A stretch of 64,000 nt of DNA from Trichoplax adhaerens (GCF_000150275.1 NW_002060946.1:1879454-1943453), one strand, 5' to 3'; counted from the first letter of the stretch, positions 11,582 to 45,170 are shown. Notes: generated from the sequence alone by a model not told the origin. Translations and numbers: made by a program.

Positions 11582-11836
11582 ATGCAAGGGGCAAATATTC
11601 ATCTACATTTTCATCATGGTTTTAATGATGACTGTTACGGTAGCGAAGATGATGATTATCAGGTTAATAGATGGAATGAAATTGGTCAAAATTTACAACA
11701 ACTAGCTGATCAATTTGATTTGCAGACAAGGAAAAATTCTTCTTCTTGCTGGAGTAAAAGAATAGTTCGGATGGTTTTACTTCTTGGGATTACCTTAATA
11801 ATATTTGTCTTGGCTTGGATCTACGCCTTTCATTGA
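11582..11836 (+). CDS. Candidate BH3-only protein A (84 aa) with C-terminal transmembrane anchor
   Basis: ATG at 11582 (the ORF-track TTG start is two codons upstream). Acidic N-terminus, BH3-like motif IGQNLQQLADQF at 11681-11716 (compare BMF IARKLQCIADQF), then basic residues and a hydrophobic tail VLLLGITLIIFVLAWIYAFH. GTAAGT donor at 11872, 35 nt after the stop. Confidence 0.75.
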   Translation: MQGANIHLHFHHGFNDDCYGSEDDDYQVNRWNEIGQNLQQLADQFDLQTRKNSSSCWSKRIVRMVLLLGITLIIFVLAWIYAFH

Positions 11837-14663
11837 GGATTAATGATTCACTATAGTTGCGATTGACTATGGTAAGTCGAGCATCCAGTAATCTGCACTT
11901 AAATAGCAAACTAGCATAGTACCTCTATGTTACACTAGAACAAAATTGATGCCATCATTAATTATCAGTATTTCTTTACCCATTCAAGAAGATAATATAT
12001 TGTAAAAATGAATTTTATAGTTTAAATTAAATGTGATACCAAAACATTTTAATGCAGTCAAGTTTTATAGTTTTCGTCCTCATCAACACATTTATTTGAT
12101 GAGTTATAATCCGCGTTTAAATCAAACTAATTAACGAAATTATTAAAACTTTTGCATTCGTAGACCATTCTTATATCATGATCACAGCCTGTATAAAAAG
12201 AGAAAAATAATACCGCCTACGCTACGTGTTCTTCTCCTTACAAATTGTAATTGTTACCGCGATATTGCTTGGGTTGTTTAGTTACGTTAACAAAAGATGG
12301 CTACTAAATTACAGTATACGCCTATGCGAATTAAAGTACTGTAACACTTTTCCAAAAGATAGGAAAATTTCAGCTCCGCATAGATGTTATAGTCTCTCAC
12401 TTCGCATAATTTAGTATCTACAATAATAAATCTACTTATCATCAAGTTATACACCGTAAATTGGATTACTCTATGGTAAATTAATACTAGCAAATCGATC
12501 AAATACATGCGAATCTGTCGATAATAATAATGTTGCAATTGAAATTTCTCGGCATATCATAATGAAATCAAGTTAATCCTTCCTATTTTTTTCTGTATCA
12601 TCAAAGGACTGAATCACTTCCATGGATTTCATTTGATACCAATAGAATTACCGATATTAAGGTACCGAATTTCAGTGAAACTCGCTGACAAAAGCATTTT
12701 AACTGGATACGTCATTTCGACAACTTCAAGCGGTTACTGTATGAAGATCTAATTACTAAGAAGTTTGTAGAAACAAACATATTGCTGCTATATTGTAAAT
12801 GAACTATAACAATATGCAACCAATACTTATCGGTATTGATCGCGTAGCTGCAAGATCCCCTACTGTATTGATTGCTTAAAAGCGTGTTAAAATAGCATAA
12901 ATTAAGTAACTGATTGCTGCAGTATTTTATTATACTGTATATACACGAGATGCTTTAAAGAAAAGGCGCCGGTTCGATATCAAGCAACAAGTTTGGTGTC
13001 AAATTGAGTAGGCTTACAGGCAGGGCAGCTTGGAAAACATTTGTTATGAGGCGGTGCGAATTGTAAGATATGAATAGCATGATGTCATGCATAAAAAGAG
13101 GCTTTTTCTCGCATTTTAAGACTAGAGTTAGTACAAAACTGCCTGTTCATAGAGTACCTTTTTACAGGAAATCAGTAATACTAAATCGTATATTGATTTT
13201 GTTGATAGAAGTGCTGCTACATTTACAAAAACTGATCATAAACTACAAGGAACTGTCTAACTATTTTTACTTCGTTCTAATTCCTGACATACTCATAGAT
13301 TCTAAATAATAATTGATTTAATGCTTGGAGCTGTTAGAGTATGATATATCATTACAGATTGATACAGTTTACGTATTTTATGACAACATCAGAGGATAAC
13401 TACGTATCTCGATTAATGTTGTCACTCGTTTTAAACAAAGAAATATCTATGCGTGCACATTCATAGTACTATTTTAATTTTTAATCTACTATGAAGTAAA
13501 GCCTTGCGATCTTAAAGGATAGCACGGTCTTGACTTTTTTTGTGCTTCTTTGCTAGTTAGATGTCAGTACCTTTGTTGGCTCAAGTGAACAGTAGCCAAT
13601 CGAATAGTTAGGCAATTACTTTTGCCTATGCACTCAAGTACTTTAGTACTGGTACGTAATATTGATGCGCTTTCCGCTGAACATAGCTAAATTTGAATAT
13701 GTTATAATAATTTAAGCTACATGTATTATCATAAATCATAAATTGTAAAGTTACATTGCTTTTGTATAAGATTACAGGATAAACACTTATGTTATGGTAT
13801 TAAATTTTTATTATCCGAATAACAATAAAAATTTAAGAAAATTTTCTATATACATAACTCATTTGCGAAATTGTAAGTTGTAATATATGACATAGCTAGC
13901 CTATTTATCCAAAATATATCTAATCCTATACCTTATGTTGCATGCCTAAAATCATTTATTGATGTACCATACCGTATATGTTTTTGCGATTTTTATTTAC
14001 TTATGGCTTTATGAGCTATGACTCACCGAAGTGCGCCATTATGTAAAACTCGCATGACTGCAACTCTTTGGCAATCAAACTTCTCCTGGATTCCCTTCAA
14101 GTACACTAGTATTGATAACGTACAGTATCTGAATATTATGCCGAGTCATCTTGCATATTCTTAACTGATGTAATGTAGGTTAAAACTTACTGGTACCATT
14201 ATGAAAGTTCATATAAAACATTAAGGGTTCTAAGTTAATGATTTGAAGCATAATTAACTATTTCTAACGTATACCGCAACAGTACAAACAGTATAGTGCT
14301 AAAAACAGAATGAATTTATATGCATCTACAGTACACCGTATCAAAAGAGATTCTATTTTCACGCACTGTTAGTAGACATTTGTTGTATAAATTTGAGTGT
14401 GGATATTTATGAAATTGCACATTAGGATGCAGTGTTACCACCAGCGATGACTGTCTACTGGCAATCCATAATATTTACAACTATACAAAGAATGCTATCG
14501 GGCTTACTCCTATAAAATGTAACATATCTACCATAACATACAGGAATGATATTTAGTTGACAGCGAACTCTACAGTACTTCAATATAGATTTGTCACCTT
14601 ATGCTAATGTCAGGTAGAAATAAGCTGGCACTAAGATAGACGGTAATATAATTACATATTTAA

Positions 14664-14790
14664 TAAGGCTTTGGTATAGGTGAAGAACTGACAACTATCG
14701 CAGACCAAAATTTTTAATACTAGAACGTACAAGACATTCATTCTTACTTATTGATACTTTATATCATCAATACATCGATATACTAAAATT
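14664..14790 (+). pseudogene. Possible decayed BH3-only paralog
   Basis: 14676-14717 reads IGEELTTIADQNF*, bracketed by stops and with no ATG. Downstream gatactttatatcatcaatacatcg loosely resembles the 3' end of gene B (gtacttcacatcaccggcaattatcatcg). Confidence 0.35.
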
Positions 14791-17700
14791 CGCAGTAGTA
14801 TGGTATATTTCACTTTACCGCAAACTAGTATTTCAAAATAAGTTAGGGATAAAAAAAGGTAAGATATAGAGGCTGACCATGCTTAGAGTTTAATTATTAC
14901 GTTAAGAATTTAATTTAAAGCTTCATTAACCATGACATTGAATACATAAGTAAGTAATGGAGTAAAAGCATAATATTCAGATTATATATCTTTATTATTA
15001 CGAATGTGAATTCATGTGATTAGTTAATAAGGTAGTATCAAATCCTAAATAATATAGACAATAAGTAGTTGATTAATCATAAGTCAATAAAGTAATTAGT
15101 AGAAATAATGATGTGATGTCAAAATTTTTTGATTATCAATCTGTCATAATATTAATCAGTAATGTTGAACAATTGCTAATAAAAAAACATCAAGAAATGA
15201 ACTGCTTAAAGATTTATCTTTCGGTAGAAGTCAATGTAACTCTTTAGATTGATAGCCTTTAACCTATTGGTATCAAATCTCGTTTAATTCAGTTCAATGT
15301 GTTAATATGTTGATTATACTTTAACCGTTGTAAAACTTATTATTAAATGGCCTCCCTTACTGGTGCGCAATATAGTGTTAAATCACGTTAAGCAGCAATT
15401 TCTCGAATTTTCATCACTCCTAAAAGGATGATGTCATTGTAAGCTATTAATTACTTGAACGCCGTGTTATACGAACGTATGTCTTTTCTCATACATTGTT
15501 AAATTGCTTACCTAAAAATAAGAGCAATGTAAAGAGTAAAATAACAACCGTGTAAAGCTTTGAAATTAACGCGCATTGAATATTAATAGGATAAATTCTG
15601 AAGCTCAAGTTGTGTACACTGTCGGAACCAGTACTCAATTTGACAACGGATGAAAGTATTCATTAATATCATTACCGCTTCAGCGATTACATTTTAAATC
15701 TTACAGGAAATTTTCAGGAAAAAAAATATTTCTATGCAGGTGTAAATAGTATTCCGCGAAAAATATGGGATTTGTATTAACGAGCCATGCGTACTTTATT
15801 AGGCGGCCGACAACATACGAGCAGATGCCATTAAAGCTTCTTTCATTATATAACATATTATAGCGTGCTTTCGTATATGAATCAGAAAAGCATGAGTCAT
15901 ACTGCGTATTTAGTAAGTGAACGTATTGGTTAATTTTTGTCGTCGGAGAACCCATATTGAATTCGGCGCCGTTTCTAGACAAACCGGGCTGTTGCATCTT
16001 TGTTCACGGTATAAGGAGTATCAATTTATAATGGCGTCGATGGGCAAGTTAGCATAATGTACAGCAGTAAGTTTACATAATAAGTATGTATATTTATGTA
16101 GAAGTCCTACGTAATATTCAATATCTAAGCTATTACGACTTTATCAGACTGGACGCCATTGTACGCAAACAATGTGACCTTTATAAAAAAGTCAATCTAG
16201 CAATTTATTGCCTGTATTATGACAAGATTGTTGATAAGTGAACTAGCTTGCGATCCATTAAGTTATCATTTTAATTCAACAGGACTTACTACTAAGTTAG
16301 TAGAATTTACTAGATTAGCCTACGCTTTAAACAAATAATGTACAGAATACTTGAGTGACTGTGAATCCAATGTAGTAGTAATATACTGTAATATGCATTA
16401 AAATTAATTATTATTATTTTTCCCTTCTAGTAAATATACGACGGAATCTATTTTTTCTGAATAAAATGTATATAAACAATCAAGGCAATAAACAAGAATA
16501 TTCAACATCAATTTCATTTTATTTGATGGGGAATCGTAAATGGGTGTTTATGTGCTGTTTATTGACATTCAAAATGGGCAAGATTATGCCGTAGAAATGT
16601 AACCTGTTAACATCAACACGCAGTACAATACAGCAGTATTAGTACAGTATATGTCCGAGCGATCAGTTCGTTTCAATGCCATTTGATAGAAAGGAACAAG
16701 TCAACAAACAACACACTGCAGTCGCCGCTTTACATGCAATTCTATTCTTCTGTAGTCATGGTAAATCCAATAAAAAATATGTTTCTTGCATCGGTGACTA
16801 CCATTGGATCCAGTTTCACAAGTGGAAATGCTCATTGCGTGTATGAGACAAAAGGCGGAAATTTTATTAGCGTCTAGTTGTTTCTTTTTTTCATGTCGTT
16901 GTTGATCTCTCTTTACTATTGCCCACTCACAGTAGAGTGGAGATTTTGTTGCATTCTACTGAGGGCTGTCCACTGTCCACACTTGACAGTGGTGTACTGT
17001 GGCGTTTTCAATTTTTATTTTATTTTACTTCATTTTATTGATTGATTTTGTTTTGAATTTATTTTGATTTTATTTCATTTCCCATCGGCCTCACGACTGC
17101 ACTCTGCTGCAGTCGTAATATTGACCGTACACCCGTACAGTACAGTACAGTGTACAGTGTACAGTGTACAGTGTGGCGGGGATTGATGTGTTTGTGATGG
17201 TGACTACACCTGACACCCGGTATACTGAATCCACGTTCCTTTGTAAAATGCGCGGGAAATGTAATGTCAACATTGCCTCTCACTTTTCATTCATCCTGGA
17301 ACCTTTACAATACATTGTACTGTAATTTACAGTACAATGTATTTTTGGATCACAATGATCACTTCTTCACCAGGTTAGAATGACAGGTGCAGTGGAAAAA
17401 CTTGAAAAGGCAAGCTTGGACACGTTTATCACTCACAGCTGAGCACTGTACTGCACATCATTAATATTGAGTTGATGAACAGGACTCTAGATATCGATAC
17501 AGTATTTACTGGATAATGACGCCATTTCAATCAGGCAAATCGATATTCAACACCGTATTATTGAATTGGGTTTGGGTAAGATGATTTCCCACCATCACCT
17601 GTTCAATGATGACCGATACAGTATTTGGTTATCACGCAAACTAAGTCACTAAAAGTACGATGTTGTAGATCCGCACTATTTCATAGATGCATGCGTACGG

Positions 17701-19714
17701 TATGGGTGCCTCGGACAGAGTTGAATGATCGTTTTTTTGAACACAAGCCACTTTCCTGTCCTATAACATATAGTATTATGTTGTATTCGACGGTAAGTAC
17801 AGCGATGATTTTATTTCTATATCCGTTGGGTTAATCGTGAAAGGGCAGCATTACAGTGGCGATCATTGCGTGAGGTTCTTTTGTTCGATCAATACAGTAC
17901 AACTAAGATTAGAATACTGTAATACTTCCTTTGCATAATCTTGTACAGTGTACAGTACAGTAGTCTAAATCTCCATGTAAATTGATGTCAATCACGGCTT
18001 ACTGATCCAAAGTACAAGTGGATGCCAATGTTCCGTAAAGTGATTAATCAATTAGTTAAATAAACATGAGTCAAACTTCTTGAATTCATGATGCATGTGT
18101 ACTCTACACTTATTGTACAGTACAGAATAGGGTTGTTGCGATATACAGTGCAAAATGACAGAAACTTGTTATGATAAACAGTGTAAAAATGTTGATGCTC
18201 AATTGCACATTTTGCAATCTGCAGACTCCTGAGTGTAGTCGCTCGGCAACGAAGACTGTACAGTGTACAGTACGGACTGGCGCTCTCCAGTAGTGAGTAA
18301 ATAAATAAAGTACTGTACTCTAGAGCATGTTGGCCACGACAGCATGTACAGTACATTGTACAGTACAGCGGGATTAAATTGGCTGGCACTAAGGAAAATA
18401 AGCTGTGTAGGCTAAATCAAGCCCCAAGTAGATAAAAGCTTCAATGCAGACGTAGCCCAATAACTCAGGGATGTAAACCTGGCTTTCATTTCTATCCATT
18501 TGTTCTTATTTTTTCTCGTACAGTACTGTAGAATCTGTAAATAATGGAAAATTGTTACAGTACTGAATGAAAATTGTACAGTTCGCACAAATCCCGCCCA
18601 TTCTCTGATAGTCTACTGTACAGTGTACTGTACATTGTACAGTCATTTCAACTCACACATGACGAGGAAGGCTTGAATAATGGAATACAGTACTGTAATA
18701 ATAATAATGATAATTATTATTATTGTTAATAATATCATTATTAATCAATCGTTCCAGTACTCAATATTTTTTTTTTTCTAATGTTGGATTTGTGAGCAGA
18801 CAACAACAACTTCTTGTCAACATAATAATTACTAATTATACATACTGTACTATATATACAGTACTATACTGTATAGTGTATACCTGCATTTGTTGGTGAA
18901 CACCCAACAACATCAATAACAATGGCTATCGTATTCAATTTCGCTAGTCATTGCAACTGACATAACTTAACTCGTGAAATGGAATAAAAAGTTGAATGAG
19001 TAATGAATTGAGTACAGAACACCATAATAGGATCATACTGTATAGTGTATATCCATTGTTAAAGAAGAGAACTGTTGTTGGAATGATTACGCTAAAGATA
19101 AGGTCACGAGGAGGTGGACTATACAGTACAGATCATCATGCACTACCGTACTGTGAAAGTAGTGTACGTCAATAAAGCCGGGCTGGGAACACAGTAGTCG
19201 TTGTACGCTTATCCCTGGGATCGTTAATGTGGATGACGACTATCGTTCTGTGTTACCTTTTACCGACGTTTCATAATAGATCTCTAGGAAGTGGTATAGG
19301 TTGATCAATTTATTGATATTCATCAGGTGGTTGTACTCTTCACTAGAAAACTTGGAGTAACAAGTCATCTTGATTTTTTAACCCAGGATGAAATGGAATT
19401 TTTGTTTTGAGTGATTCATCCAACTACAGTACCGTACTTTGATACTGGTAGTCAGGGCCTACTTACTACGATAGCCTACACGTCCAAGTTGGAGTAGAGG
19501 ACAGTCGTCGCAGTAGTCTCTAGTTAGTGATTTCATTTTTTATTTATTTATTTCTATTTATCTTTTCTTTTTTATTGATTTCAACCTGTCATGGGCGTGT
19601 CTGTACTCCACAGTACGCTCAATCTACAGTGCAGTGCCGTATTGTACTCTACAGTACAAGTACTGTAGAGATGGAAAGCGACAACTACTACTGTACTGTA
19701 CCGGTGCGGTCTCG

Positions 19715-19873
19715 TCATCACGGTTGGGAAGTTCAAGTTGTAACCAGTCATAGGGTCATTGGAATAGTACGGTATTGTACCGTGCTGTCATGTACCGGTA
19801 CGGCCTCATCATCGCTGTTGGTAAGTTCAAGCTGTAACCAGTCTTGGGTGATTGGAACAGTACGGTATTGTAC
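19715..19873 (+). repeat. Diverged tandem duplication (~90-bp period) upstream of gene B
   Basis: aagttcaag.tgtaaccagtc..gggt.attggaa.agtacggtattgtac occurs twice. Confidence 0.8.
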
Positions 19874-20140
19874 TGGTGCTGTAATGTGAAGTACCGTACT
19901 CAACCGTACCGAACCGTACCGTGCATGCTCGACAGTACGTTCTGCATCCTACAGTACTTTTTCAAAGTTTGGACTTGATGTACAAAAACAACTTCTTCAT
20001 CTTTTACTACTATAACGCCACCAGTCTTGCCCGAGCATACAGTCGATCTTTTCCTATCCGTCGCCTATGACAGTACTAGCTTACAGTACAAAGCACAGTT
20101 CGGTACTGTAAGGTCAGCAGACCCGTTAAAGTTCACCACA

Positions 20141-20466: not shown

Positions 20467-20682
20467 ATGGATCAAGATACAACCAACGAGATCGATGAAC
20501 AAGTTTGGCCTGATATAGGGGCTGATCTAAGGCTCCATGCAGACGAATTTGACAATCAATATCGCCGAAACTCCAATCTTGAAATGGTCATTGCCACATT
20601 TGATGGTATAGTTCAATCAGTGCTATTTCATCAAGTTCTCCGGATCGTACTTCACATCACCGGCAATTATCATCGCCTCTAG
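20467..20682 (+). CDS. Candidate BH3-only protein B (71 aa), PUMA/BIM-like
   Basis: EQVWPDIGADLRLHADEFDNQYRR resembles PUMA EEQWAREIGAQLRRMADDLNAQYERR. Amphipathic C-terminus LFHQVLRIVLHI. 12/23 identity with protein A across W..IG..L...AD.FD.Q.R.NS. TATAAAA at ~20142 and GTAAGT donor at 20712, 29 nt after the stop. Confidence 0.75.
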   Translation: MDQDTTNEIDEQVWPDIGADLRLHADEFDNQYRRNSNLEMVIATFDGIVQSVLFHQVLRIVLHITGNYHRL

Positions 20683-23600
20683 TCTTGTCGGATTCATCTC
20701 TGAAAATTGCGGTAAGTACACTAGTAATGCATACATCAATTGATTGCCTACCATCAACAAAATGAAGGCCAAACCTTTCATCAACTTTCTATTATACCAT
20801 GACTTGTTTTGCAGCATAAGTCCCCCGACAAATGGAGGCTTTTACACGTCCAATTTTCAATCAGTTTCTGACCCTTTCAACATTCCTTTATTTCATTTTA
20901 TTTCACTCTATCTTAATATCGACAATACGCGCGGTCAATCGACCACTTCCATACGCATTCTAAAAAATATCGTCACTGAAATACTTGAAATCAAGAACGC
21001 CGGCCGTATACGTTATAAGGTCTTTGATCTAGTACATTACTGTACGTGCATAGGGCTTACCCCACCAAATAGAGAAGTACTGTACAAGTATACGGTGTCT
21101 TATTGATTGGATGATACGCTTATATACAGTACTTGAATTAGTTGATCTGTTTTCATCGCAGTTGAACTTTGGAGTTACTATAAATTACCAACAAGTAACT
21201 GACTGACAATAATCATGCACCAGTATTGAAGCACCTTTGTTGTGTATTGGCATTTCCGACTGGGTTTTTAATATTTGTCCAATGGTGGGCTTATGACGGT
21301 AACGACAGAGCTAATTTACTTAACAATGTACAAGTGTATTAATTCCTTGTCATGAAACGATCAGTCATGCAATAGCTCTTGTCGACTACCGTCGGCTGCT
21401 AAAAGAAAATCTTTCTAGTATTTCATCATTCAGCCTGAATGATTTCGTAGCAGGCGAAGATAAATGTTGAAGCGCTGCACACATCAACTTCAATTAATAA
21501 TATTAAATAAACTTCATTAATTCAAAATCAATTGCATATAATAGTTCGTGTCGCATGCTTGATACCCCTAAATATACATTTAGTAGCTTAGCCAGAAATC
21601 TTGCTTCAAACCACACTTTAAAACAACATCATTTTGCTGAATTAATACTTACTAAAGAGAAATATCCAGAGTAGCAACTCCGAACTGTTCTTCAAAGTCG
21701 AAATACCTTTGCTGGAGTTGCCCTATGGAATAGTGACGGTCATTGCATAGGGCCCTGGAAGTAAATTTAGATAGTTTAAATACAGTGCATTCTGACAGTA
21801 TTGCACTCATAAGAGGAATATCATTGCCTAACTACATAGACCACCAATGACCAAGATTCATAATAGGATTGGACTGTATATATTATAGCTTGTAATTTAC
21901 CGAAATTATATTTTATTGTATTATTGTCGGAAAAATAAGACCTGTGCTTTCTTGATCACTATAGACAAGCCGGAAACCATCCTCAATACATGAGGAAAAT
22001 GATAATGGCCCAAAAGGATATCGGAGAACGGACTCGTAAATGCCAACAAGTATGCTTTTCAACTGCATTCTTTATCAATTGGTAACTATTGCTAAGATTG
22101 ACAGTGTGATGAAAGCAGAAACTAGGAGAAAATTGGTGGAGAAGTGAATTTCAAAGATCACTTGTTAACCGTGTTGCTTAAAAAGTTGCTAGTTACTTAC
22201 TAATTATTCCGTATTTAATCCACCCACACGTTTTGTTTTATTACGCGTGCAAAATGCGTTACAATGAGTTGTTCAGTTTCTTGGTGACTTGCTGATATTT
22301 CTATTTTGAAAACGATGCATTAGGAAAGCTCTGTTGGTTTAACTGCATTGATTTATTTCGAAGTTGACAAAGGTACTGAAACGTAAACGATCATTACCTG
22401 TTGAACTGATTAAACTGCAGTCTCAAATCGTTAAACCCAAACGACTGGAAATGGTTCAGTCGTTGTAAGGGCATATATACGAACTGTGGTGTTGTTGCTA
22501 GATGTGATTTTGAAACACAAGTAAATCCCAATAGCTAGTACACACTGTGCTATTTTGTCCTGTCTAGTCTAATGCGAAATTTTTATCGGAGGACAGTATG
22601 TGCATACATTATATGACATTATATACATATATATACATATATATATATACATACTGCATATAGGCATTGATTGCAAAATAAGCTACAAGGTGTTACTCGA
22701 TGAAGGTTTTGTGTGCTCACCATTCTGTAACAGCCAGGGTGTGATGGTTGATATTGAAGGATATTTTTATGTTTTTGTAATCTCTGTATATTTGCCATGT
22801 GCAATGTACAGTTACTTACAGTAGGCTGTCCTACAGCACTACGGCATATTGATTATTGTCAATGGTATTATTTTTTTATTTTAAATTCGAGACCCTACTG
22901 TGTACATCGTACTTTGTTAATTAAATTGTATTTAATTTTTTATCGTTTTATTAGTCATAAAGATTTTACAGGCGATATTTCGTATCACTAGATGTAAATC
23001 ACGATTGGATGGAACTCCAAATCATTTTTTTAAGTTACTGATTCTTGTTTTATTCATGTACGATTTGTATTTTATTTCTAGCTCAACATACAAATACCAT
23101 TACTGTAGTATTGCAGTATGGGTTTATCTAAATGTAACGTAAAGACTTTGGAAATATAAACAATGATTAATAAAATATGCTTATGATCATGTCTCTCTGA
23201 ATTTACTTCTTGTGGTTATTTGTAACCACCAACATGCAGTACGTGTATATCCCCTCCAAATAGACAAAAATGAGAAAATACTGTATCCTATTTACGGCTG
23301 TCACTTCCATAGGTATACTGTTCCACCTAGGTGATTAACAGACGATTCTCTTTTACTGAATATCATTACTATCAATAATAATGACTCGCCTTTGCCCCCA
23401 TAGCAGTGTAATCAAGAGATTTAATTTTGTAATAAAAACATTATAATTAGCAATTGTTTCCTTCCGCACGAAACGCATAGAGCGTATCGGTTAGTATACC
23501 TTGTAAATTATGAAATCAAGTGAATGTTTCAATTAATCTTATTATATGATCAATTAATAAATCATGACACCCAGGCGTCGATTGCTGCTGAAAAGCCACA

Positions 23601-31169: not shown

Positions 31170-31380
31170 ATCGACTTATAAATTGACGTATTGCCAGGTC
31201 AGTTTATAAACTGAGACCCATGCATTCTGTCGTTTATAAAACTGTAAAGGCGCCGATCAACTTATAAACTAAATAAATTGCTTTTATAGTATATATCTGA
31301 CCTGGTAATAGGTCAATTTATAAGTTGACCGGCGCCTTTGTAGTTTATAAACGGCAGAGCAATACGTCAATTTATAAAAT
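31170..31380. repeat. Foldback/MITE-like imperfect inverted repeat built from TTATAA-containing subunits
   Basis: ttataaattgacgtattgc pairs with gcaatacgtcaatttataa; gtttataaaactgtaaaggcgccgatcaacttataaa pairs with tttataagttgaccggcgcctttgtagtttataaac. Confidence 0.75.
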
Positions 31381-32117
31381 GAATTAAAAGCTTACCACGT
31401 AGATTCGGATAATAAATGCATAAATGTAGGTGGATAGATAAAACGATTTTATGGTAATCTTTAATTGGTTACTTGAAACGTATAGATTGTACAGGCTTAA
31501 TCTTCATGATCATGAGCAGAGGGAAATTTAAGTCTAGTTTCATCTTATCGTTTACAGCTCTTTAGATTGCCAAAGTTAAATTCGTTATCTAAATGGAGTT
31601 AAGGTCCGCTTTACTGGTTCCAGAAGAAGAAAACGAAGTATAAGTTCGTTCTGCATAATTGATACTTCAATCTTGACACTGCATCAACTCATACGTAATG
31701 TCCATTTATTTACTAATAATTTCCGTAGCAAGGGCATCTTTTTGAATTTTACAAAAAGTTATTATACACACAATAGTAAAGATTTACAAAAATTGTGCAC
31801 AGCACTCAGTAATCAGTAAGAACGGCTCAAATTTTTAATTACAAGCCATTCATTCCTTCGTAAATACTAGAAGGGTATTTCCGGTTATATATTTCCGATT
31901 GTTTCTTAACGGAAGATGTCCATCGTGATTTTAATGTTTATTTGTTCAAATGCGAATTTGTCAATATGTACTATTGAGCCTTAAGAATCTCTGTAATATT
32001 ATCCTGAGTTAACTGTTAAATAACAATCTCACATACAAATAAAGTAGTGTAGTCACGATGTAACGGATGGTTCTCGAGATAGTCTGGAATGAAATAAACA
32101 ATAGAACTAGATTTCAA

Positions 32118-34438: not shown

Positions 34439-34899
34439 TTTGCACAGATCTTCTAAGATTAACAGAATAAAGCCAGGGTTAAGAGCTCGATCATGTTCAT
34501 CAAGGTACACTCGACTATATACAAGATGATATCAATCCACTACGAATCTGGAAGTAGTGTTTAAAGCAGCTAGAAGATACAACACCATTACAGTAACTGA
34601 TTCCCGGAAACTATCACACATTGATTTCTTAATACACAGTAGAAATGCTTTTAATTCATTCTAAACATTATAACTTGTTCGGTAACTTACATCAACCCTC
34701 CGAAATAACCATCGTAGCCAGAACAGCCATATATTGAAGTTGAACTGAACGATGGCCTGGGCTGCAACAGCCTTCAAAGGCTCATTTACGATCTAGTACC
34801 AGTATGGTACTGTCGAGGTCTACGGCGCACTAGTACCGGTACTGGACTTAGAAATCGATATGGTCTGATCTGGTCCGGAGCTTACAGTAGTTTGCAGAA

Positions 34900-35120
34900 T
34901 ACTGTAGAATGCCTGTACTGTACACTGTAGGGACTTCTACACTTGTACTGTACAGTACAGTACTGTACTGTACTGTACACTCAGTACAGTTAGAGTGTAC
35001 AGTACTGTATGACTGTCGTACAGTGTACAGTACGTAAATTGCAGGTTCTCAGTACAGCACAGTACTGTAAAGTTCTATACTGTACAAGTACTGTACAGTA
35101 CATAGTACAGTACACTACAG
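34900..35120. repeat. Dense TACAG/TACTG low-complexity tract (also ~16.6-20.1, 39.9-43.2 and 55.2-55.4 kb)
   Basis: Mixed-orientation runs of tacagta, tactgta, tacagtgta and tacactgta. Confidence 0.85.
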
Positions 35121-37095
35121 TATGACAGGCGAAACGTTAGACCGGCCGCATGGGCAAGATTAGTGCTATTCGGATTTTCTGAGGCAAGAAACGCACATGG
35201 CTGCAGCGGAGGATGATCGGTCTCAGATATGAATTCAACATGAACGTTAAGAATCTTCCTTGCAAGTTCATCTTTCATGGAAAAACTGGATCAATGTTGA
35301 TCCGAAAAACTTTCAAGTACGAAAGGTAGAATAAAGTGCAATCCAGATCGATGTTGATCGCAGAAATTGTCGTAAAATGCATCTCCGATTCAAAATGAAG
35401 GACAAGTCTTGCTAAGTAAGGTGGCACATTGGAATCAATTATACAGTACAGTATATTTAGCTCAATTAAATTGAGGCTATGTAGAGTTTTGTCTACAAGT
35501 TTTACAATGTATAAGTTCAATGTTGAAGCCAAGATGATGAATACTTAATCTGTCAATCCACTGATCGTATAGTGTGATTATATCAAAAAATGTCCTCTAA
35601 GAAGTTCTGAACTGGCTTATAGTCCTTGTATATTGTTTTATCAGTGCAGTAGATTACTGTAATCGAACTGTATCTTTCACTTTGATCATAGGTTTATGCC
35701 CAAATGACGAATGTGCATGTAGAATCTCAGCGTGGTAAAAGCTCGCGATCAATTGTATCGATGACTTCTTTCGTGAGCTGCATCTCGGCGTTCATGACGA
35801 TACGTGCAATTGATTAGACGAAAGCCTGTAAGTTGACCAGAAATTATAGTCAAGTTTAATGGGGATACTATTCCGAGGGTCTGAACATTACAATTTTTAT
35901 CTTGCGTACATGAAAATCGTATAGGCTTGCAAAGAAAGTCACTTCCCAAGTTTTGCGCGAATCAATCATCGACATTCCGCAAGCAGTACTCCACGAGCCG
36001 TTTTCAAGCGGGTTCTCCTGTATTACGCTGTAATTTTCAGCATCCTGAAGGAGAGATGGCTCGTTCTTCTTAAATTAGCTACATAAACTGGGCGAATTGA
36101 TTTAGTAAGTACAATATGTTTGTTTTTTTGACATCGGGTAGTGATTTGCATTAGCTTAGTCACTTCGACTTGTAATGGTTCACATGTCTACTGTACTGCA
36201 GTACTTTGTTCTATCAGTCGTTAGCTATTACTGTTGCTATATAAAGAGAAGAACATTTTCTATAGGTAGAAGTTGGGTTCATACAGAATGTTTATAAATG
36301 TCTATCAAATGAAAATGATGATTTCTATGACTAATTACCAATGGATCCTGATGATCTACAATTCTATAAAATGAATTGTATATGATATTAAAAGTAAATT
36401 CTGATTGTAATGGCGTCCATTTACGCGTGTAGTATGTTAAGTGTATCAATTATGTTACCTTTTCTGTGGTATTTGACGACAGTTTGCAACTTTATTCTAG
36501 AGAACTACTAGGGACCTGGGACGAAATATTGCTATTGCTGGGAAGTTTGGCGAAAAATTTCATCAACATCTATTTAAGCTTAAGTAGATGTCATGTATTT
36601 ATTTCTATATTGCTTTCTTTGTAATACTGTACAGTGTACAGTAGTATGCATCAAGTTATCAATAAACCGAATTTACAGAACTGGTGCAGCTATCATAAGC
36701 GTACGTGTATTTATTTTTATATGTGATAAATTTATTCTGCATGCAGCATCATGGATAGGGTAGTGGTTTCTTGACCGAAATATCTCTTAATTCGAGACGT
36801 ACAGTATAATAAGGCTAGTTGGTAAGCATTTGCTGATTGTAGAAATTTGGATGTTATTTACCTTTCCTTGAGAAAAGAGGTTTACGACTATACACTATAC
36901 AGTACTCTAAGAGCAATTAGCGGGCTTACAGCAATGAGTAATTTGGTTGTATTCTCATAAAGTGGAAAATGAAGGACAATTAGCACTAGAGTACAATGTG
37001 CAGTATGTTCAGACTGAATTTAAGGTTTAATGTCCTAAGCTCTATAAAGTATTAACCTTTCAATTAGGAAAAAGTTAATTCGTAGTAAACATTAA

Positions 37096-37350
37096 CTTAA
37101 GGAATTCTGATCAACCAAGTTATTTGAAAGACTGTAGTTAGCATGACATTTTTTCTACAGTATATTGTCTATTATCACTGTTATTGTTTGTTTTTAGAGT
37201 ACTTAATAAGCCACCATCGTTTGATTAGCTAATCTGCCGGCCCAAGGTCGAGTCTTGCTGGACTTGTTGTTTACAGTACATTTCGTACAGTACAGTACCA
37301 GAAGACCGCGGTACAGTATTTAAATCATTATCGTTTGAATGGCCCAAGGT
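37096..37350 (-). repeat. Inverted copy of 42273-42465 plus 42925-42987
   Basis: For example, ccaccatcgtttgattagctaatctgccggcccaaggtcgagtcttgctgga (37212-) is the reverse complement of 42368-42419, and tgaaagactgtagttagcatga is the reverse complement of ~42938-42960. Confidence 0.9.
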
Positions 37351-37417
37351 AGTACTGTACTGTATCATACTACTGGCCAGCATTGCAATCTCATTCATCG
37401 TACAGTAGCGTGCAATC

Positions 37418-39740
37418 GGGCAGCAGTGTTGATATATAGCGCCGTGGGTTCCCTTCGGTGTTCATTTTGCTTGAAAGAACATCAGGACTCGACCAATTTT
37501 TCGTGTATCGGTCATCTCCAAATTATAACTTACAAGCTGCAAATCAATTTAAACCACCTTGGTTCGTATATTTTTGTTCCAATTAGAACTAAAAAAAATT
37601 GGGTTTTATCCTAAAGTGCAACATTCAATCGGTATCCGCATTACTGTAGTTGGTCTACTTCGTCGAAACGCCTTCAACCACCTGAGAGTCGCATTGAATG
37701 GATGATGCAGATAATATACGTGCTGAAGAAAGGAGGCTATGGCACATTGACGATTTTGCCGAGAACGCTGTACCAAGAGGAAGAAATTATGCTTGGTATG
37801 ATAATCTTCCTTTAATGCGGCGATATTTACGATATTTGCTGCAAGCTTGGCAACAACTACGCTATATTTTCTTCTAGTTGATGGAAACAATTCATTTCTA
37901 TTAAACGTTGAATTGCATAGAAAAAAGGAAAACTTTAATTTTTTTTTGTCTACGTATTTTCGTGCTGTACCATGTTCTACGTGAAGTACACCGATGATCG
38001 TAGCTGGTTTTAATCTGTATAAAACGATGCTGTCTATACTCTTTCTTTCCTTTTTTTCCATATTCTGCTTTGTGCTGGATACACTTAGCAAGATATGACT
38101 TTTTTGATCAATTTCGTATGAATTATCAGGTTATAAAGTTTCAATGCTCTGTAGTTAAATACTACTGTATGCGACAGTGTGATATCCAGTGGTCAATACA
38201 GTATTCAGATGGAATCGCCGTAGGCGGTAGTGCCGGTGAAAATTTGTTGTAGTCAACTTGGTAGTATGATGCTGTAGTATCGCTGATTTCAGCCATATCA
38301 AGTTATCTTGTAATTCTTTCCACTATTATCCATCACCTGTTTGTCATCAATCGCTTGGATCCGCTGTTAATTTCCGAAAAAGTAGCAGAGTACAGTACAA
38401 TATTATTATTATGAATGACCTCTGTAAACAGTGTGTGGACGGACGTACCATGTATTGCGCATGTTGGTCAGCTGCAAAGACTTTCACAGTATGCTGTCTT
38501 ACTCTGAAAAGCGTAAGCGGTACCGATTCCACCTGTAGAGGTAACAAACTGAATTAACCTCCTTGTTATCCTACAAACTAGAGTAAACTCTATACAGTAT
38601 TGTTATTCTTTTTTAGTTCGTTAGTCGGTTAGATAGTCAACTAGTTTTTCAATTGATATTTAATTGTAAAGACTATAATCTTGGGTGCCAAGATTCCTTC
38701 AGTAATAAATGATAGTAAATCTCTGACTATCTCGTCTACATCATCTGTGACGCTATAATTATACCATAGTATTCGGTTGTTGGAACTGAATTATTTGGTG
38801 ATATAGCTAATCTCGCCTCTTTAAGTTAGTAAGTGGCGTTCTACGCAAGGATTGGCGTGTGTAGACTACTTTGTTACTAGTGGTGTGTGACAAGTATCTA
38901 TATACAGATGTATACAGTACTGTACAGTACATATCGATAAACTACAAGCCGACGGACGCGTACGCAATCGAACATGAATTTCAATTGTAACCGCAATGTT
39001 AACTAGTTTTTAATTTTCTTCTTGTCATCGAGGTACAAATTTGTTACTCGATATGTTATGCTTGATTGATTATATATTGTTATTGTTGTACAGTATATAT
39101 AGTTAGTAATAGATTAAATACGATATCTTAACCATAAAGGCATAAATAAAGGAAACACTATACTGTATATGTACGTATACTGTACTGTATGATGATTGTA
39201 TGGTAGTACTTGTAATACAGTAGGTGATAACATTGTAAAAGGCGGACTGATAAGCTACTAATTGTAGTGCGAAGTATAAACTGTAATCGTATCGAGGTGT
39301 AACCTCGTGTAGCTGTAAATACCGATCAACTAATAATAAAATGCGGTTATCAATCTTACTCACGGAGTGAACTTATTATTGAAGAACATAACAGTTATTA
39401 CATGTAAAGTCAATGAACAGACTGTATTTGAAGATATTTTGCTTCATGAAAGGATAGACTAGAGAAATGGCGATGCAGTAATATTTGATATTTTGGTAAT
39501 GATGGAGTACAATCCGTATATTATGACGTCACAAAATGATGACCATTTTTCAATCAAGTATAGAATCCATGATCGCGCTAATTAACTTACTGTCATAGTT
39601 AATTTACTTTCATCGATCGACAAATTTTTCAAATCGTGTAAGACGTATTACTATTCATAAAATATATCTTGATAGCGTAATTTAAATTTAAATTTGTATT
39701 GATCAATTAACTCTATTAATAGCCCTACATAGGAACTTTT
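37418..39740 (+). repeat. Segmental duplication copy 1 (direct repeat of 43215-45170) carrying the BH3-dead paralog
   Basis: Long near-identical blocks with copy 2. Segments unique to copy 1 at ~38580-38897 and ~39085-39395. Confidence 0.95.
37698..37877 (+). CDS. Duplicate of protein C with mutated BH3 (59 aa); BH3-dead paralog or incipient pseudogene
   Basis: Manual translation: MDDADNIRAEERRLWHIDDFAENAVPRGRNYAWYDNLPLMRRYLRYLLQAWQQLRYIFF*. The ORF is intact, but AGRRLRRIGD has become EERRLWHIDD. Confidence 0.6.
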   Translation: MDDADNIRAEERRLWHIDDFAENAVPRGRNYAWYDNLPLMRRYLRYLLQAWQQLRYIFF

Positions 39741-39745
39741 AGGTT

Positions 39746-40978
39746 AACAATAGGTCTAAGGCGCATCTTGCGAAGATGCGCCTTAGACCTATTGTTCCCG
39801 TATGAAAACAATACAGCATGCATAGTAGGCGTGAACCTTCAGCAGCTAGTAGCAAAACGGCGTAGAATCTACTGCCTTTGCTATTAAACGAAAATGTTAC
39901 TGTACAGTACTGTATGCCATACAGTAGGATAAAGCTGGTGTCATGTCTAGTACTGTGGACGTTCGCCAGTTTTAATGAACGAACGTGCGAACGTCCAATT
40001 TGAACGTCGGACGTTCATTGAACGTACCAACGTACACAGTGTACAGTGTTAACACTACAGTATATAGTGTACACTGTACTGTACAGTAACCGTGCATTTG
40101 TACAGCATACAGTACAGTACATTACAGTACAGTACAGTACTGTACACAGTACACGATATAAAGTTACTGAACCTCTGACAGGTCTACACGGTACGGTATA
40201 AAGTTACTGAACCTCTGTTAAATGAGCACATTATCGTAAACCGTCAGTAAAGCGACGGGAGTTTGCACTACTGTACAGTAGTGACTCTGAAATACAAAGT
40301 GTTGTACTGTAAAAGACGTTTGTACTACTGTACTGTATGTACAGTACTGTACTGTACTGTATAGTATTGGGGTGGGATTATACAAACTGACTGTATACAC
40401 TGTACTGTACACTGTACACTGTACAGTACAGTTCGTCGACGTCCGATCTGACAACGAACGTACATACCGAACGTCCAAAATCGAACGTCCGTTGGACGTC
40501 CAATCGCTCGACGTCTACAGCACTAGTCATGTCTACTGTACTGTACTGTACTACTGGCCATTGCAATCTCCTTCATCGTACAGTAGCGTTCAATCGATCA
40601 AGCATTGAATTTTGTTAACCATTTTTTTTTTTGGGTTAACAAAGTTCAATGCTTGATCGATTGCACGCTACTGTACGATGTACGATGAAGGAGATTGCAA
40701 TGCTGGCCACTAGTATGATACAGTAGACATGGCACCAGCCTTAAATGCTCATTGTTAAACTGTACAGCGTGTATGGAAAGTCTCCAAAGACTTTCCAGTA
40801 TTTTTCCTAGAAATTTGAAACATAAATTCCTAACATTTTCGTTTAATTGCATAGGCAATAGCTTCTATGTCGTTTTGCTACTAGCTGCTGAAGGCCCACG
40901 CTTACTATGCATGCTGTATTATTTTCATACGGAACAATAGGTCTACGGCCGCATCTTCCTTTCCTTAGACCTATTGTT
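39746..40978. mobile_element. Two head-to-head copies of a ~340-bp hairpin-ended non-autonomous element (possibly Helentron/HINE-like)
   Basis: 39785-39899 is the reverse complement of 40831-40945, and 40558-40620 of 40635-40702. Terminal hairpin at 39746-39796. Further partial copies at 42984-43115 (+) and ~37355-37418 (-). Ends abut TTAA. The family assignment is inference. Confidence 0.6.
39948..40525. mobile_element. Non-autonomous hAT-type element (MITE), 578 bp
   Basis: TAG...CTA termini and 15-bp TIRs (tagtactgtggacgt / acgtctacagcacta, 2 mismatches). 8-bp TSD gtcatgtc at 39940-39947 and 40526-40533. The empty site is visible in the related copy at ~43075-43095. Subterminal AACGT/GACGT repeat arrays. 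Confidence 0.85.
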
Positions 40979-43214
40979 CCCGTATGAAAACAATACAGTT
41001 TAAACAATAAGCAGTACGTACAGTAAATACAGGCCAAAAATAGAAAAGTCTATTCAGCTCGATGGATGTTGCTTCTTAGTTAAATTGCCCTATTTTTATC
41101 GTTATACTGATCCAATCATTGATATATATTAACAATTATATGAATAGTGAACAATTTGCAATATGTTATGTATCTCTTTCTTGAAGATTAAGCTATAAAA
41201 GTTAAAAATGAAGTAAAAACGCTGCCCAAACCCGATCAAATTATTGATTTTCTAACCCGAAATGAGCACAATCGCTATACAAGCACTGCATTAGCACAGA
41301 ATTACTTGACTTTGAATCCCTCCCTGGAGTTGGGTTTGAGGTTGACTTTATTAAGGACACTAATGCTGGCTCTTCTCGGCCACCGTAGATAGCTGACTGA
41401 GAATGAAGGTTCCATTGATTAACGAGTCACCGTTTCTTTACAAATCTCATTTACTGTATATGACGTATGTACACACTATCCAGTATTATTTGCGAGTTAA
41501 GATAAAAAAGTTTATTCTCTTCCGGATGAATTGCTTATGTATTAGCAGCAGAGCTTATCTTCATATTTTGAATAGCTAGTCAATAACTCCTACCGTACTG
41601 TAAAAGTAAAGTAACCAATCTCAAGTACACGATCACTAAGTTAGTACACGTTGCAACGCGTTGTAGATCATCTTATATTCAATTAATTATTTGTCAGGGA
41701 CTACTGAAGGAAAGAGAAAGAGAGACAGAAAAGGATTTTTCATCGACAAAAATGTGAGAATCGATTTTTTTGCTGGTCATTTGGCTATACCTGAAGACTG
41801 AAAGCGTACAACGTCACCAATCACCTTGGAGGCACTTTTTTGCGAGCACACTTGTAAACAATGTACTGTACTGTACATTCAAGTGTACAAGTGTACTGTA
41901 CAGTACGATGTGTTCATTTCCTTTCAGACTGGGAAAAAGGGAAGAACAGTACCGAAATCAAGGTCAAATTACTATACTTTATACCATAATGGAGCTAGAG
42001 AGCTGAACTTTTTATACAAGTTGATAGAATTAAATGTCTATGCAAGAAGAGTCGAAGCAGATAGTAATCATTACTATGTACAATACTTTGCCATGCCAAA
42101 GTTGGAAACGAAAATAAACCCACGTTTACAGGCGGAGGGGGTTCCATTTTTATCGATGAAAAGTCGTCGTTTCCTGTCTCTTCCTTTTTCTTCCGTACAG
42201 TGTACAGTACAGTACACTACAGTACTGTATAAAATGTACTGTCAACATTGAACAATAAGTCAAGCAAGGTTCGACCTTGGGCCAATCAAACGATAATGAT
42301 TTAAATGCTGTACCGCGGTCTTTTCGTACAATACAGCACAGCACAGTACAGTACTGTCAACAACAAATCCAGCAAGACTCGACCTTGGGCCGGCAGATTA
42401 GCTAATCAAACGATGGTGGTTTAAATACTTTAAACAATAACAGTGATAATAGACAATATACTGTATATCACACTAGGCAATTGTCGATATTATGATAGCC
42501 CTTTAATAATCAATTAAAATGTTCCACTTAGCGCGCATTCAAATGTAAATGAAGCGTACAGTACATACTGTACGTACAGTACAATAGAGAGAGGAAAGAT
42601 AAAACCGCTATTGAATGGCATAGTACGTACAGTAGAAGTTGACCAACGGTATTACAGTACTGCAAGACTGCAAAGTACTGTACACTGTACAGTATGTTTA
42701 TGTGTACTGTACTGTACACACAAACTGTGCAGTATGAATAGAGTGTGTGGAAAGTCATTTGATATTTGTACAGTACAGCGTTTACGGGAAATTTTTGTAC
42801 TGTACAGTGTACAGTATACTGGTGTACTGTACAATGTACAGTACACGATAGTAGCGGATGTCGGAGACCTTTTACTATTTTGAACCCCCAAAAACACCAC
42901 GGGCGCTTTATTATTTTAATAAGAGTGTAGCAAAAATTCATGCTAACTACAGTCTTTCAAATAACTTGATTGATCATAATTCCTTAACAAAGTTCAATGC
43001 TTGATCGATTGCACACTACTGTACGTACGATGAAGGAGATTGCAATGCTGGCCAGTAGTATGTACTGTATGATACAGTAGACATGACACCAGCTTTATCC
43101 TATGGCATACTGTACAGTACTGTACTGTACAGTACAGTAGAACGATCGAACGAGGAGTCAGTCGATTGTACTCTACGGTACAATGTACTGTAGTGTTTCC
43201 CAAAAAAATTAGGG

Positions 43215-45170
43215 GGGCAGCAGTGTTGATATTTATAGTTAGCATTGTGATATATAGCACCGTGGGTTCCCTTCGGTGTTCATTTTGCTTGAAAAAACAT
43301 CACCACTCAACCTTTTTTTCCTGTCTCGGTCGTCTCCAAATTATAACTTACAAGCTGCAAATCAATTTAAACCACCTTGGTTCGTGTATTTTTGTTCCAA
43401 TTAGAGCTAAAAAAATTGGGTTTTATCCTAAAGTACAACATTCAATCGGTATCCGCATTACTGTAGTTGGTCTACTTCGTCGAAACGCCTTCAACCACCT
43501 GAGTGTCGCATTGAATGGACGATGCAGATAATATACGTGCTGCCGGAAGGAGGCTACGGCGCATTGGCGATTTTGCCGAGAATGAAGCACCAAGAGAAAG
43601 AAATTATGCTTGGTATGATAATCTTTTAATGCGGCGACATTTACGATATTTGCTGCAAGCTTGGCAACAACTACGCTATATTTTCTTCTAGTTGATGGAA
43701 ACAATTCATTTCTATTAAACGTTGAATTGCATAGAAAAAAAGGAAAACTCATGGATGACCGGTGACACTAGTTGGATAGTGTACGCACTTGGTATCTTGA
43801 GAAAAAAAAAATGAACTTCTTAATTAATTTAATATATCTTACACGTACATAGCTAAACGATTTACTGTGCTTCGTGAATTCTAATATATTATAGTAAGCT
43901 AAACATAGTCTAGCTTGCATCCAAGTGAAAGTGAATATTTTCTTAACTTCAACTTTTATTTTTTTTTGTCTACGTATTTTCGTGCTGTACCATGTTCTAC
44001 GTGAAGTACACCGATGATCGTAACTGGTTTTAATCTGTGTAAAACGATGCTGTCTATACTTTCTTCCCTTTTTTTTTTATATTCTGCTTTGTGCTGGATA
44101 CACTTAGCAAGATATGACTTTTTTGATCAATTTCGTATGAATTAACAGGTTATAAAGTTTCAATGCTCTATAGTTCAATACTACTGTATGCGACAGTGTG
44201 ATATCCAGTGGTCAATACAGTATTCAGATGGAATCGCCGTAGGCGGTAGTGCCGGTGAAAATTTGTTGTAGTCAACTTGGTAGTATGATGCTGTAGTATC
44301 GCTGATTTCAGCCATATCAAGTTATCTTGTAATTCTTTCCACTATTATCCATCACCTGTTTGTCATCAATCGCTTGGATCCGCTGTTAATTTCCGAAAAA
44401 GTAGCAGAGTACAGTACAATATTATTATTATGAATGACCTCTGTAAACAGTGTGTGGACGGACGTACCATGTATTGCGCATGTTGGTCAGCTGCAAAGAC
44501 TTTCACAGTATGCTGTCTTACTCTGAAAAGCGTAAGCGGTACCGATTCCACCTGTAGAGGTAACAAACTGAATTAACCTCCTTGTTGTCCTACAAACTAC
44601 AGTATATACAGATGTATACAGTACTGTACACTGTACAGTACATATCGATAAACTACAAGCCGACGGACGCGTACGCAATCGAACATGAATTTCAATTGTA
44701 ACCGCAATGTTAACTTGTTTTTAATTTTCTTCTTGTCATCGAGGTACAAATTTGTTACTCGATATGTTATGCTTGATTGATTATATTGTTATTACATGTA
44801 AAGTCAATGAATAGACTGTATTTGAAGATATTTTGCTTCATGAAATGATAGACTAGAGAAATGGCGATGCAATAATATTTGATATTTTGGTAATGATGGA
44901 GTACAGTCTGTATATTATGACGTCACAAAATGATCATTTTTCAATCAAGTATAGAATCCATGATCGCGCTAATTAACTTAATTAACTTACTGTCATAGTT
45001 AATTTACTTTCTTTGATCGACAAATTTTTCAAATCGATCGACTAATTTTCAAATCGTGTAAGACGTATTACTATTCATAAAATATATCTTGATAACGTAA
45101 TTTAAATTTAAATTTGTATTGATCAATTAACTCTATCAATAGCCCTACGGGACGTATCATAGGAACTTTT
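43215..45170 (+). repeat. Segmental duplication copy 2 carrying intact BH3 gene C
   Basis: Direct repeat of 37418-39740. Segment unique to copy 2 at ~43749-43955. Confidence 0.95.
43515..43691 (+). CDS. Candidate BH3-only protein C (58 aa), absent from the ORF track
   Basis: Manual translation: MDDADNIRAAGRRLRRIGDFAENEAPRERNYAWYDNLLMRRHLRYLLQAWQQLRYIFF*. The core LRRIGD is identical to BIM. The basic/hydrophobic C-terminus resembles the BIM tail (RLLRYIVRLVW). In-frame TGA immediately before the ATG; TATATAG at ~43251. Confidence 0.72.
   Translation: MDDADNIRAAGRRLRRIGDFAENEAPRERNYAWYDNLLMRRHLRYLLQAWQQLRYIFF

Follow-up and report, generated by a model that had tools for sequence, protein, structure and literature searches.

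Do placozoans possess BH3-only proteins? The published view is that such proteins are absent from placozoans and sponges (PMC7527217, PMC8998228). A search of the Trichoplax adhaerens genome uncovered four Bcl-2 proteins, all multidomain, but no gene of the BH3-only class (Popgeorgiev et al. 2020; PMC7527217), and a 2022 review lists Placozoa as being without BH3-only proteins (PMC8998228), in agreement with the initial annotation of the locus considered here. No later report of a placozoan BH3-only protein, or of the locus tags discussed below, was found in the literature searched. The locus lies in a 64,000-nucleotide (nt) stretch of T. adhaerens DNA (GCF_000150275.1 NW_002060946.1:1879454-1943453; hereafter the window), for which the initial annotation had proposed a hidden cluster of co-oriented BH3-only genes. 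As an observation this proposal is partly confirmed; as an interpretation it is partly supported, in that two genes are upheld and a cluster of three to six is not. The two genes, represented by open reading frames (ORFs) 1 and 2, are assessed here, with a probability of roughly 55%, as real tandem placozoan genes for small, BH3-bearing, hydrophobic-tailed proteins of the BH3-only type.

The case begins with ORF2, a single exon of 71 amino acids (aa) on the plus strand (20467-20682, including the stop codon), whose first 46 codons correspond to gene model TrispH2_004896 of Trichoplax sp. H2. An orthologue (P0002) is present on two Logan contigs (SRR30664517 and SRR30660616; L002 and L003). These are collinear with the window over ~4.7 kb and align with it only as islands of 72-82% identity, indicating that they come from a divergent placozoan. 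P0002 has the same start and stop as ORF2 and is 68% identical to it in amino acids across all 71 residues. At the DNA level, the ATG and the stop codon mark the two limits of conservation (76% identity over the ORF), differences are distributed 15/11/29 over the three codon positions, and cross-species tblastx comparison finds stops in every frame except that of ORF2 itself. The initial annotation had suggested computing the ratio of non-synonymous to synonymous divergence (dN/dS) against other placozoans. For ORF2 and its orthologue, which are conserved over their full length, this ratio is 0.23 (dN 0.215, dS 0.92; Fisher p = 1.8e-5). ORF2 is under purifying selection, and it can be regarded as a real coding gene with high confidence.

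ORF1 (84 aa; 11582-11836, plus strand, including the stop codon) is 99% identical to the product of the adjoining H2 gene model, TrispH2_004895 (P0001; 117 aa), of which it forms the last coding exon (from 11589). In six-frame comparisons within the window, ORF1 and ORF2 are reciprocal best matches (E ~5e-4), with 12 of 24 residues identical over a motif core that reads W-x-[ED]-I-G-x-[ND]-L-x-x-x-A-D-[QE]-F-D-x-Q-x-R-[KR]-N-S. A gene-structure feature is also shared, as a GTAAGT splice donor lies 29-35 nt past the stop codon in ORF1, ORF2 and the ORF2 orthologue. That of ORF1 is at 11872-11877 (plus strand), so its exon runs 35 nt beyond the stop, implying an intron in the 3' untranslated region (3'UTR). 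The two ORFs are adjacent, co-oriented paralogues, apparently derived by tandem duplication. On the basis of this paralogy, the shared gene structure and the H2 model, ORF1 is probably a real coding gene as well.

What the paralogues have in common is a stretch of BH3 character. The BH3 consensus tested was Phi1-Sigma-x-x-Phi2(Leu)-x-x-Phi3-Sigma'-Asp-x-Phi4. In ORF1, the BH3-like core occupies residues 31-54 (W-N-E-I-G-Q-N-L-Q-Q-L-A-D-Q-F-D...; 11672-11743, plus strand, with the 12-residue motif at 11681-11716), and every strict position of the consensus is satisfied. The PUMA-like core of ORF2 occupies residues 14-37 (W-P-D-I-G-A-D-L-R-L-H-A-D-E-F-D-N-Q-Y-R-R-N-S-N; 20506-20577, plus strand, motif at 20515-20550), and here, as in the orthologue, all positions except Phi3 are satisfied. 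ORF1, ORF2 and P0002 all agree at the columns W, I, G, L, D, F, D, Q, R, N and S. Among these columns are Phi1 (I), Sigma (G), Phi2 (L), the Asp and Phi4 (F) of the BH3 consensus, and Sigma' is Ala or Gly. The shared signature can be written Ile-Gly-x-x-Leu-x-x-(Leu/His)-(Ala/Gly)-Asp-x-Phe, with a PUMA-like Trp upstream and Q-x-R-(R/K)-N-S downstream, the latter being Q-Y-R-R-N-S in ORF2 and its orthologue. The residues retained by selection in the core are the BH3 signature residues.

A profile built from 39 columns of the core in three sequences (ORF1, ORF2 and P0002; profile A5) was searched against 177,635 distinct PDB chain sequences. The five best matches were PUMA BH3 peptides (E 0.004-0.007), followed by BAD (E 0.11), BIM (E 0.25-0.7), the BH3 regions of Bcl-xL and Bcl-2 (E 0.4-1.3) and EGL-1 (E 1.2). 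Among the 60 matches listed, nearly all were BH3 motifs, alongside a handful of unrelated proteins. PUMA peptides also came top when ORF2 was searched as a single sequence (E = 0.8). By this unbiased profile search, the conserved core is classed as BH3-like. No Bcl-2 family domain was found in ORF1, ORF2 or P0002 in Pfam at E <= 1, so that BH3 is the one BH motif of ORF1 and ORF2 and a Bcl-2 fold is absent, as is expected of BH3-only proteins.

The BH3 core is followed in both proteins by a C-terminal tail. In ORF1, a predicted transmembrane (TM) segment spans residues 65-83 (11774-11830, plus strand; Kyte-Doolittle 19-residue mean 2.70) and is preceded by K/R residues. As the lone hydrophobic segment, at the extreme C-terminus of a protein with an acidic N-terminus and no N-terminal signal sequence, it has the features predicted of a classical tail anchor. 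The first third of ORF1 is net acidic, and residues 28-45 give the highest helical hydrophobic moment of the protein. The ORF2 tail (residues 40-71; 20584-20679, plus strand) is moderately hydrophobic to amphipathic on the Kyte-Doolittle scale, with a 19-residue mean of 1.43 that rises to 1.88 in P0002, making it borderline as a tail anchor. AlphaFold2 predicts ORF1 to be disordered at residues 1-23, with helices at 24-51 and 56-83 (predicted local distance difference test, pLDDT, 59; low confidence), and ORF2 to form one long helix at residues 13-70 (pLDDT 73). A BH3 helix with a membrane tail after it fits these models, which nevertheless do not discriminate between hypotheses.

Several observations weigh against reading the two genes as BH3-only. 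Occurrence of the motif alone is within chance: in first-order Markov simulations of the window, the strict BH3 expression has one match (ORF1) against an expectation of 0.17 per 64 kb, a looser pattern is expected 1.9 times per window and is observed twice (ORF1 and ORF2), and a PROSITE-style BH3 pattern has no match anywhere in the window. The claim must therefore rest on evidence independent of the earlier search for motifs. Two observations do go beyond chance, namely the reciprocal best match of ORF1 and ORF2 and the purifying selection on ORF2 seen against a divergent placozoan. Moreover, BH3 is a short, degenerate motif for which these ORFs were preselected, and PDB E-values ignore that genome-wide selection. 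The likeness to PUMA, however, reaches past the pattern used earlier, taking in the Trp on the upstream side and Q-Y-x-R-R on the downstream side. At Phi3, the Leu of ORF1 is replaced in ORF2 and its orthologue by His, which is atypical and could weaken binding. Signals from curated families point towards BH3 as well but stay below threshold. ORF2 matches Pfam PUMA (PF15826) at 12 bits and E = 0.26, where the gathering threshold is 26.4, and neither ORF1 nor P0002 matches that family at E <= 1. The sole Pfam match of P0002 at E <= 1 is Bclx_interact (PF08945, the Bim BH3 domain; E = 0.099), at 13 bits against a gathering threshold of 25.

Further points of this kind concern the relatives of the two genes. 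An exhaustive profile (A1) search of 1.84 billion representatives returned three placozoan proteins and no relative outside Placozoa, although, as cluster representatives were searched, any relative sharing more than 50% identity with P0001 would have been absorbed into its cluster. A bacterial cadherin-repeat protein (P0004) returned by the same search was a spurious match. In the absence of relatives beyond Placozoa, descent from bilaterian BH3-only genes is not demonstrated. No divergent-placozoan orthologue of ORF1 was found in the exhaustive profile search or in the scan of JGI metagenome contigs, where family patterns yielded nothing that could be confirmed. Between H1 and H2, ORF1 shows zero differences, as do about half of all windows of its size, which makes this comparison uninformative on constraint. 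Lastly, the best Pfam match of ORF1 is to no BH3 family, being a sub-threshold match to synaptobrevin (PF00957).

This match raises a first alternative, namely that ORF1 and ORF2 are real tail-anchored proteins whose helix serves a function unrelated to Bcl-2, for example in a truncated R-SNARE-like or coiled-coil micro-protein, and that their BH3 likeness is coincidental. Both the best Pfam match and the best non-repeat PDB match of ORF1 are to synaptobrevin/VAMP2 (E 1.9e-4 and 0.16, respectively), aligning residues 25-83 including the TM segment, and the same alternative can draw on the chance expectation of the degenerate BH3 pattern and on the failure of every BH3 family to reach its curated threshold. 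The synaptobrevin matches, however, are driven by the TM segment and stay below the gathering score (21.6 bits for ORF1 and 20.5 for P0001 against 26.4). They span profile positions 41-88 of 89, which take in the TM segment, the juxtamembrane W/K region and, of the SNARE motif, the C-terminal half; its N-terminal half is not represented in ORF1, whose residues 1-23 are those predicted to be disordered. Neither ORF2 nor its orthologue carries any SNARE signal. By comparison, the BH3 signature is the very part that the paralogues and the orthologue share, and the profile derived from it finds BH3 motifs of at least six proteins. A helix unconnected with Bcl-2 is thus a possible explanation of the two genes, but a doubtful one. 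Matches of ORF1 to WD40-repeat structures in the PDB, with E-values down to 1e-19, were discarded as an artefact, being sums of weak repeats with per-domain E > 100.

A second alternative is that ORF1, and possibly ORF2, is untranslated, representing a chance ORF in a non-coding transcript or an annotation artefact. Exact look-up of four small ORFs of the window in a collection of 15 billion proteins returned none, with ORF1 and ORF2 present only as the differently modelled H2 proteins and nothing from the original T. adhaerens gene set. The H2 models also deviate from the simple ORFs, at the N-terminus of ORF1 and at the tail of ORF2. For ORF1, three further coding exons precede the ORF in the H2 model, placed by tblastn of P0001 on the window and by splice sites: a first one of 6 nt (8228-8233) and two more (11060-11116 and 11289-11331), all on the plus strand and either coding or 5'UTR. 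The model's acceptor AG lies at 11587-11588 (junction 11588/11589), and its use would remove the ATG at 11582. Such an alternative N-terminus would leave the BH3 core and tail unaffected. The initial annotation had described each ORF as a single coding exon, which holds for ORF2 but may not hold for ORF1.

For ORF2, model TrispH2_004896 treats 77 nt of the tail (20604-20681) as an intron, with donor G/GTATAG and acceptor CTCTAG/, and reads onward into 3'UTR exons to give an 80-aa product. This isoform is unlikely to be the main product, since tail and stop are kept in frame across species. Furthermore, the donor GT of H1 is missing at the equivalent position of the orthologue, and the two species differences within the initial 38 nt of the following exon would each change the amino acid if read in the H2 model's frame. 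The tail-less model is probably a mis-model or a minor isoform. Downstream of the ORF, the H2 model and the present analysis agree on the junctions of a 3'UTR intron (20712-21964, plus strand), which has its GTAAGT donor 29 nt past the stop (35 nt in the orthologue) and a TATAG acceptor, both conserved between species.

That ORF1, and possibly ORF2, should be untranslated is very improbable. Purifying selection acts on ORF2 in exactly its own frame, with start and stop conserved; ORF1 shares with ORF2 a protein core and a gene structure, unlike random sequence; and both match evidence-based MAKER gene models in H2. The genes are only partly hidden in the sense of the initial annotation, as both already exist as H2 gene models. 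They are named 'hypothetical protein' there, and no link to BH3 or apoptosis was found for them in the sources searched, so that this part of the earlier description stands.

Several features in the neighbourhood of ORF2 lie outside its coding sequence. The exon that follows its 3'UTR intron starts at 21965, and its first 38 nt (21965-22002; ~1419-1456 in L002) are identical between species at 36 of 38 positions. This is far higher than the conservation of ORF2 itself (76%), and a 27-nt core within it is single in the window; the segment is more suggestive of a conserved element in RNA or DNA than of coding sequence. Further downstream, between ORF2 and UTP23 in a region without H2 gene models, islands at 22172-22405, 24258-24682, 24770-24842 and 25190-25315 are collinear with L002 at 72-78% identity. 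Their tblastx pieces are short and interrupted by stops, and no frame is open across a whole island, which marks them as conserved non-coding elements. In the interval between ORF1 and ORF2, 3 kb ahead of the ORF2 start codon, a site resembling a p53 response element (17408-17427, plus strand) consists of two RRRCWWGYYY half-sites without spacer and with one mismatch. One such site at <=1 mismatch was observed where 0.10 are expected, and 10 of 100 shuffles also contained one, so the site is suggestive only. In vertebrates, PUMA and NOXA are p53 targets.

The third ORF named in the initial annotation does not belong to this family. Three plus-strand ORFs of 84, 71 and 58 aa had been claimed, and all three were verified in coordinates and motifs. 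ORF3 (58 aa; 43515-43691, plus strand) also has a mutated duplicate, as had been stated (37698-37877, plus strand; 59 aa, 83% identical, motif degraded). Both lie in a segmental duplication of ~2 kb, detected by self-blastn and also present in H2 (copy A 37422-39728, copy B 43241-45148; 89-97% identical), where the copies of the ORF3 region are identical to those of the window. On the minus strand, the duplicate is overlapped by a 151-aa ORF (37609-38061) that is exactly an annotated H2 protein (P0005), and ORF3 by an N-terminally truncated paralogue of it in the second copy (43423-43752). Neither copy yielded a Pfam domain in its minus-strand ORFs. When the copies are compared, 3 synonymous and 10 non-synonymous differences are counted in the ORF3 frame (dN/dS 0.87) and 11 of each in the antisense frame (dN/dS 0.27, p = 0.003); 10 of the 13 substitutions between the ORF3 copies are located in the 'BH3' stretch. 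In ORF3, Phe immediately follows Asp, which places Phi4 out of helical register, and strict and loose patterns both fail. A hydrophobic or amphipathic C-tail had been ascribed to all three proteins and is seen in ORF1 and ORF2, while in ORF3 the maximum 19-residue mean is -0.37.

Searches add no support for ORF3. It has no match in Pfam, in the PDB or to a hidden Markov model (HMM) of the ORF1/ORF2 family, no H2 gene model was found in its frame, and no homologues were returned by a word-indexed search that was limited to proteins of 32-101 aa and leaves other lengths open. ORF3 is probably an open frame antisense to a minus-strand gene within a recent duplication, and neither it nor its duplicate is judged a BH3-only member. 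The two possible relics fare no better: candidates at ~7245, 14676 and 17593 give tblastn E-values of 0.3-13, which is noise level, and the two picked up by the family HMM score only E 1.7-1.9. With the relics unsupported, the birth-and-death cluster of up to six elements is unsupported too. That ORF1, ORF2, ORF3, its duplicate and two relics form one such cluster is scarcely credible, for although ORF3 has L-R-R-I-G-D as in the BIM BH3, its duplicate is intact with an in-frame 3-nt indel and all ORFs are on the plus strand, selection follows the antisense frame of an annotated H2 protein, the motif is off register, and the tail and all matches are lacking. Separately, a 95-codon stop-free frame is identical in both duplication copies (38270-38554 and 44289-44573).

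The window is AT-rich (~33% G+C), with the fragmented ORF landscape typical of eukaryotes, and scans of its 64 kb for tRNA and Rfam families gave no matches. Over their full length, positions 1-21858 are 99.2% identical to contig NOWV01000046.1 of Trichoplax sp. H2, and positions 28784-48642 match H2 at 97-99%, which bears out the earlier suggestion of a placozoan host and makes T. adhaerens H1 or a very close relative the most likely source. In H2, the end of a 905-aa gene is followed by TrispH2_004895, TrispH2_004896, UTP23 (minus strand; annotated with an Fcf1 domain), a 151-aa hypothetical gene (minus strand) and a gene with an FSIP1 domain (minus strand). A Ser-rich open exon of 391 codons (46712-47884, minus strand) is part of the latter gene (836 aa in H2). 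At 56732-64000 (plus strand) lie exons of an alpha2delta-like gene with sub-threshold VWA_N and VWA matches, which continues past the right end of the window. Palindromic ACTGT/ACAGT simple-repeat clusters are dispersed through the window (at ~17.1-19.7, 34.9-35.4, 37.3, 38.9-43.1, 44.6 and 55.3 kb), with ACTGTACTGTA present 29 times. They give rise to many pseudo-ORFs of the 'LYCTVQY' type and also flank duplicated segments. Tandem duplications occur at 19691-19887 (94-bp unit, 2.1 copies, 84% matches) and 55467-55893 (213-bp unit, 2.0 copies, 90% matches).

If ORF1 and ORF2 are indeed of the BH3-only type, how would they act? Their proposed organisation has three parts: a disordered acidic N-terminus, an amphipathic BH3 helix and a hydrophobic C-terminal tail. 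The tail would serve as an anchor in the outer membrane of mitochondria or in the endoplasmic reticulum, and the BH3 helix would insert into the groove of trBcl-2L1 or trBcl-2L2, with the four hydrophobic positions in its pockets and the invariant Asp paired with an arginine of the groove. This would free trBax to permeabilise the outer membrane, in the manner of proteins of the PUMA, BIM and BMF type. Docking and trBax release are proposed by analogy with established BH3-in-groove biology, and membrane targeting, groove binding and killing by ORF1 and ORF2 are likewise inferred. The odds are slightly in favour of the two proteins acting as BH3-only ligands, and the chances are even that they are the missing placozoan BH3-only initiators, that is, PUMA-like membrane-anchored ligands of trBcl-2L1 and trBcl-2L2.

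Published binding data are consistent with such a role. For the pro-survival proteins of Trichoplax, affinities of 5-170 nM have been measured towards human BH3 peptides (PUMA, BIM and BID), with isothermal titration calorimetry (ITC) giving 5 and 81 nM for the binding of PUMA BH3 by trBcl-2L1 and trBcl-2L2 (PMC7527217). The niche suggested here for ORF1 and ORF2 already has a proposed occupant in trBak (trBcl-2L4), as a BH3-only-like sensitiser that neutralises trBcl-2L1 and trBcl-2L2 by BH3-in-groove contact (PMC7527217). trBak is a multidomain protein with a Bcl-2 fold, whereas ORF1 and ORF2, at 71-84 aa, lack both a Bcl-2 domain and any BH motif besides BH3.

How do ORF1 and ORF2 compare with known BH3-only proteins? 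PUMA (BBC3) provides the best PDB match of the core (E = 0.004), and the likeness goes beyond the 12-residue motif, comprising a Trp 3-4 residues upstream, I-G-A-x-L-R, A-D and a downstream Q-Y-x-R-R. PUMA is similar, too, in being small, with a predicted disordered N-terminus and a hydrophobic C-terminal segment. Differences from PUMA include a length of 71-84 aa against 189 positions in the Pfam model, the lack of similarity outside the core, the His at Phi3 of ORF2 and the absence of intermediates among the 1.84 billion proteins searched. Common ancestry with vertebrate PUMA is considered unlikely. In BIM (BCL2L11), BMF, HRK and BIK, a BH3 helix is followed by a C-terminal membrane anchor. 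ORF1 shares this layout, and BIM BH3 peptides and the Pfam Bim BH3 domain appear among the sub-threshold matches, whereas no significant similarity extends past the motif and the tail of ORF2 is only moderately hydrophobic. The Hydra BH3-only proteins and EGL-1 of Caenorhabditis elegans resemble the present candidates in being non-vertebrate and recognisable by a short motif only, with EGL-1 itself matched at E = 1.2; the exhaustive profile search, on the other hand, revealed no relationship, Hydra sequences not having been compared directly. ORF1 and ORF2 are best described as a candidate addition to the known BH3-only class, with homology to any bilaterian family not demonstrated.

The view that placozoans lack BH3-only proteins underlies models in which these proteins originated later, perhaps from a Bak-like ancestor, and in which trBak fills their role in Trichoplax. 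ORF1 and ORF2 provide concrete objects with which to test this question, as ITC, crystallography and BMK DKO (Bax/Bak double-knockout) assays exist for the trBcl-2 proteins. They also illustrate how small genes can be overlooked, having been missing from the first genome annotation, and having in the case of ORF2 a conserved tail that the H2 model appears to splice away. If the present reading is correct, the three-tier Bcl-2 switch of BH3-only, pro-survival and Bax/Bak proteins would already have been in place in the placozoan lineage. The view that permeabilisation in early animals was controlled by multidomain proteins alone, with trBak as a stand-in sensitiser, would then need to be revised.

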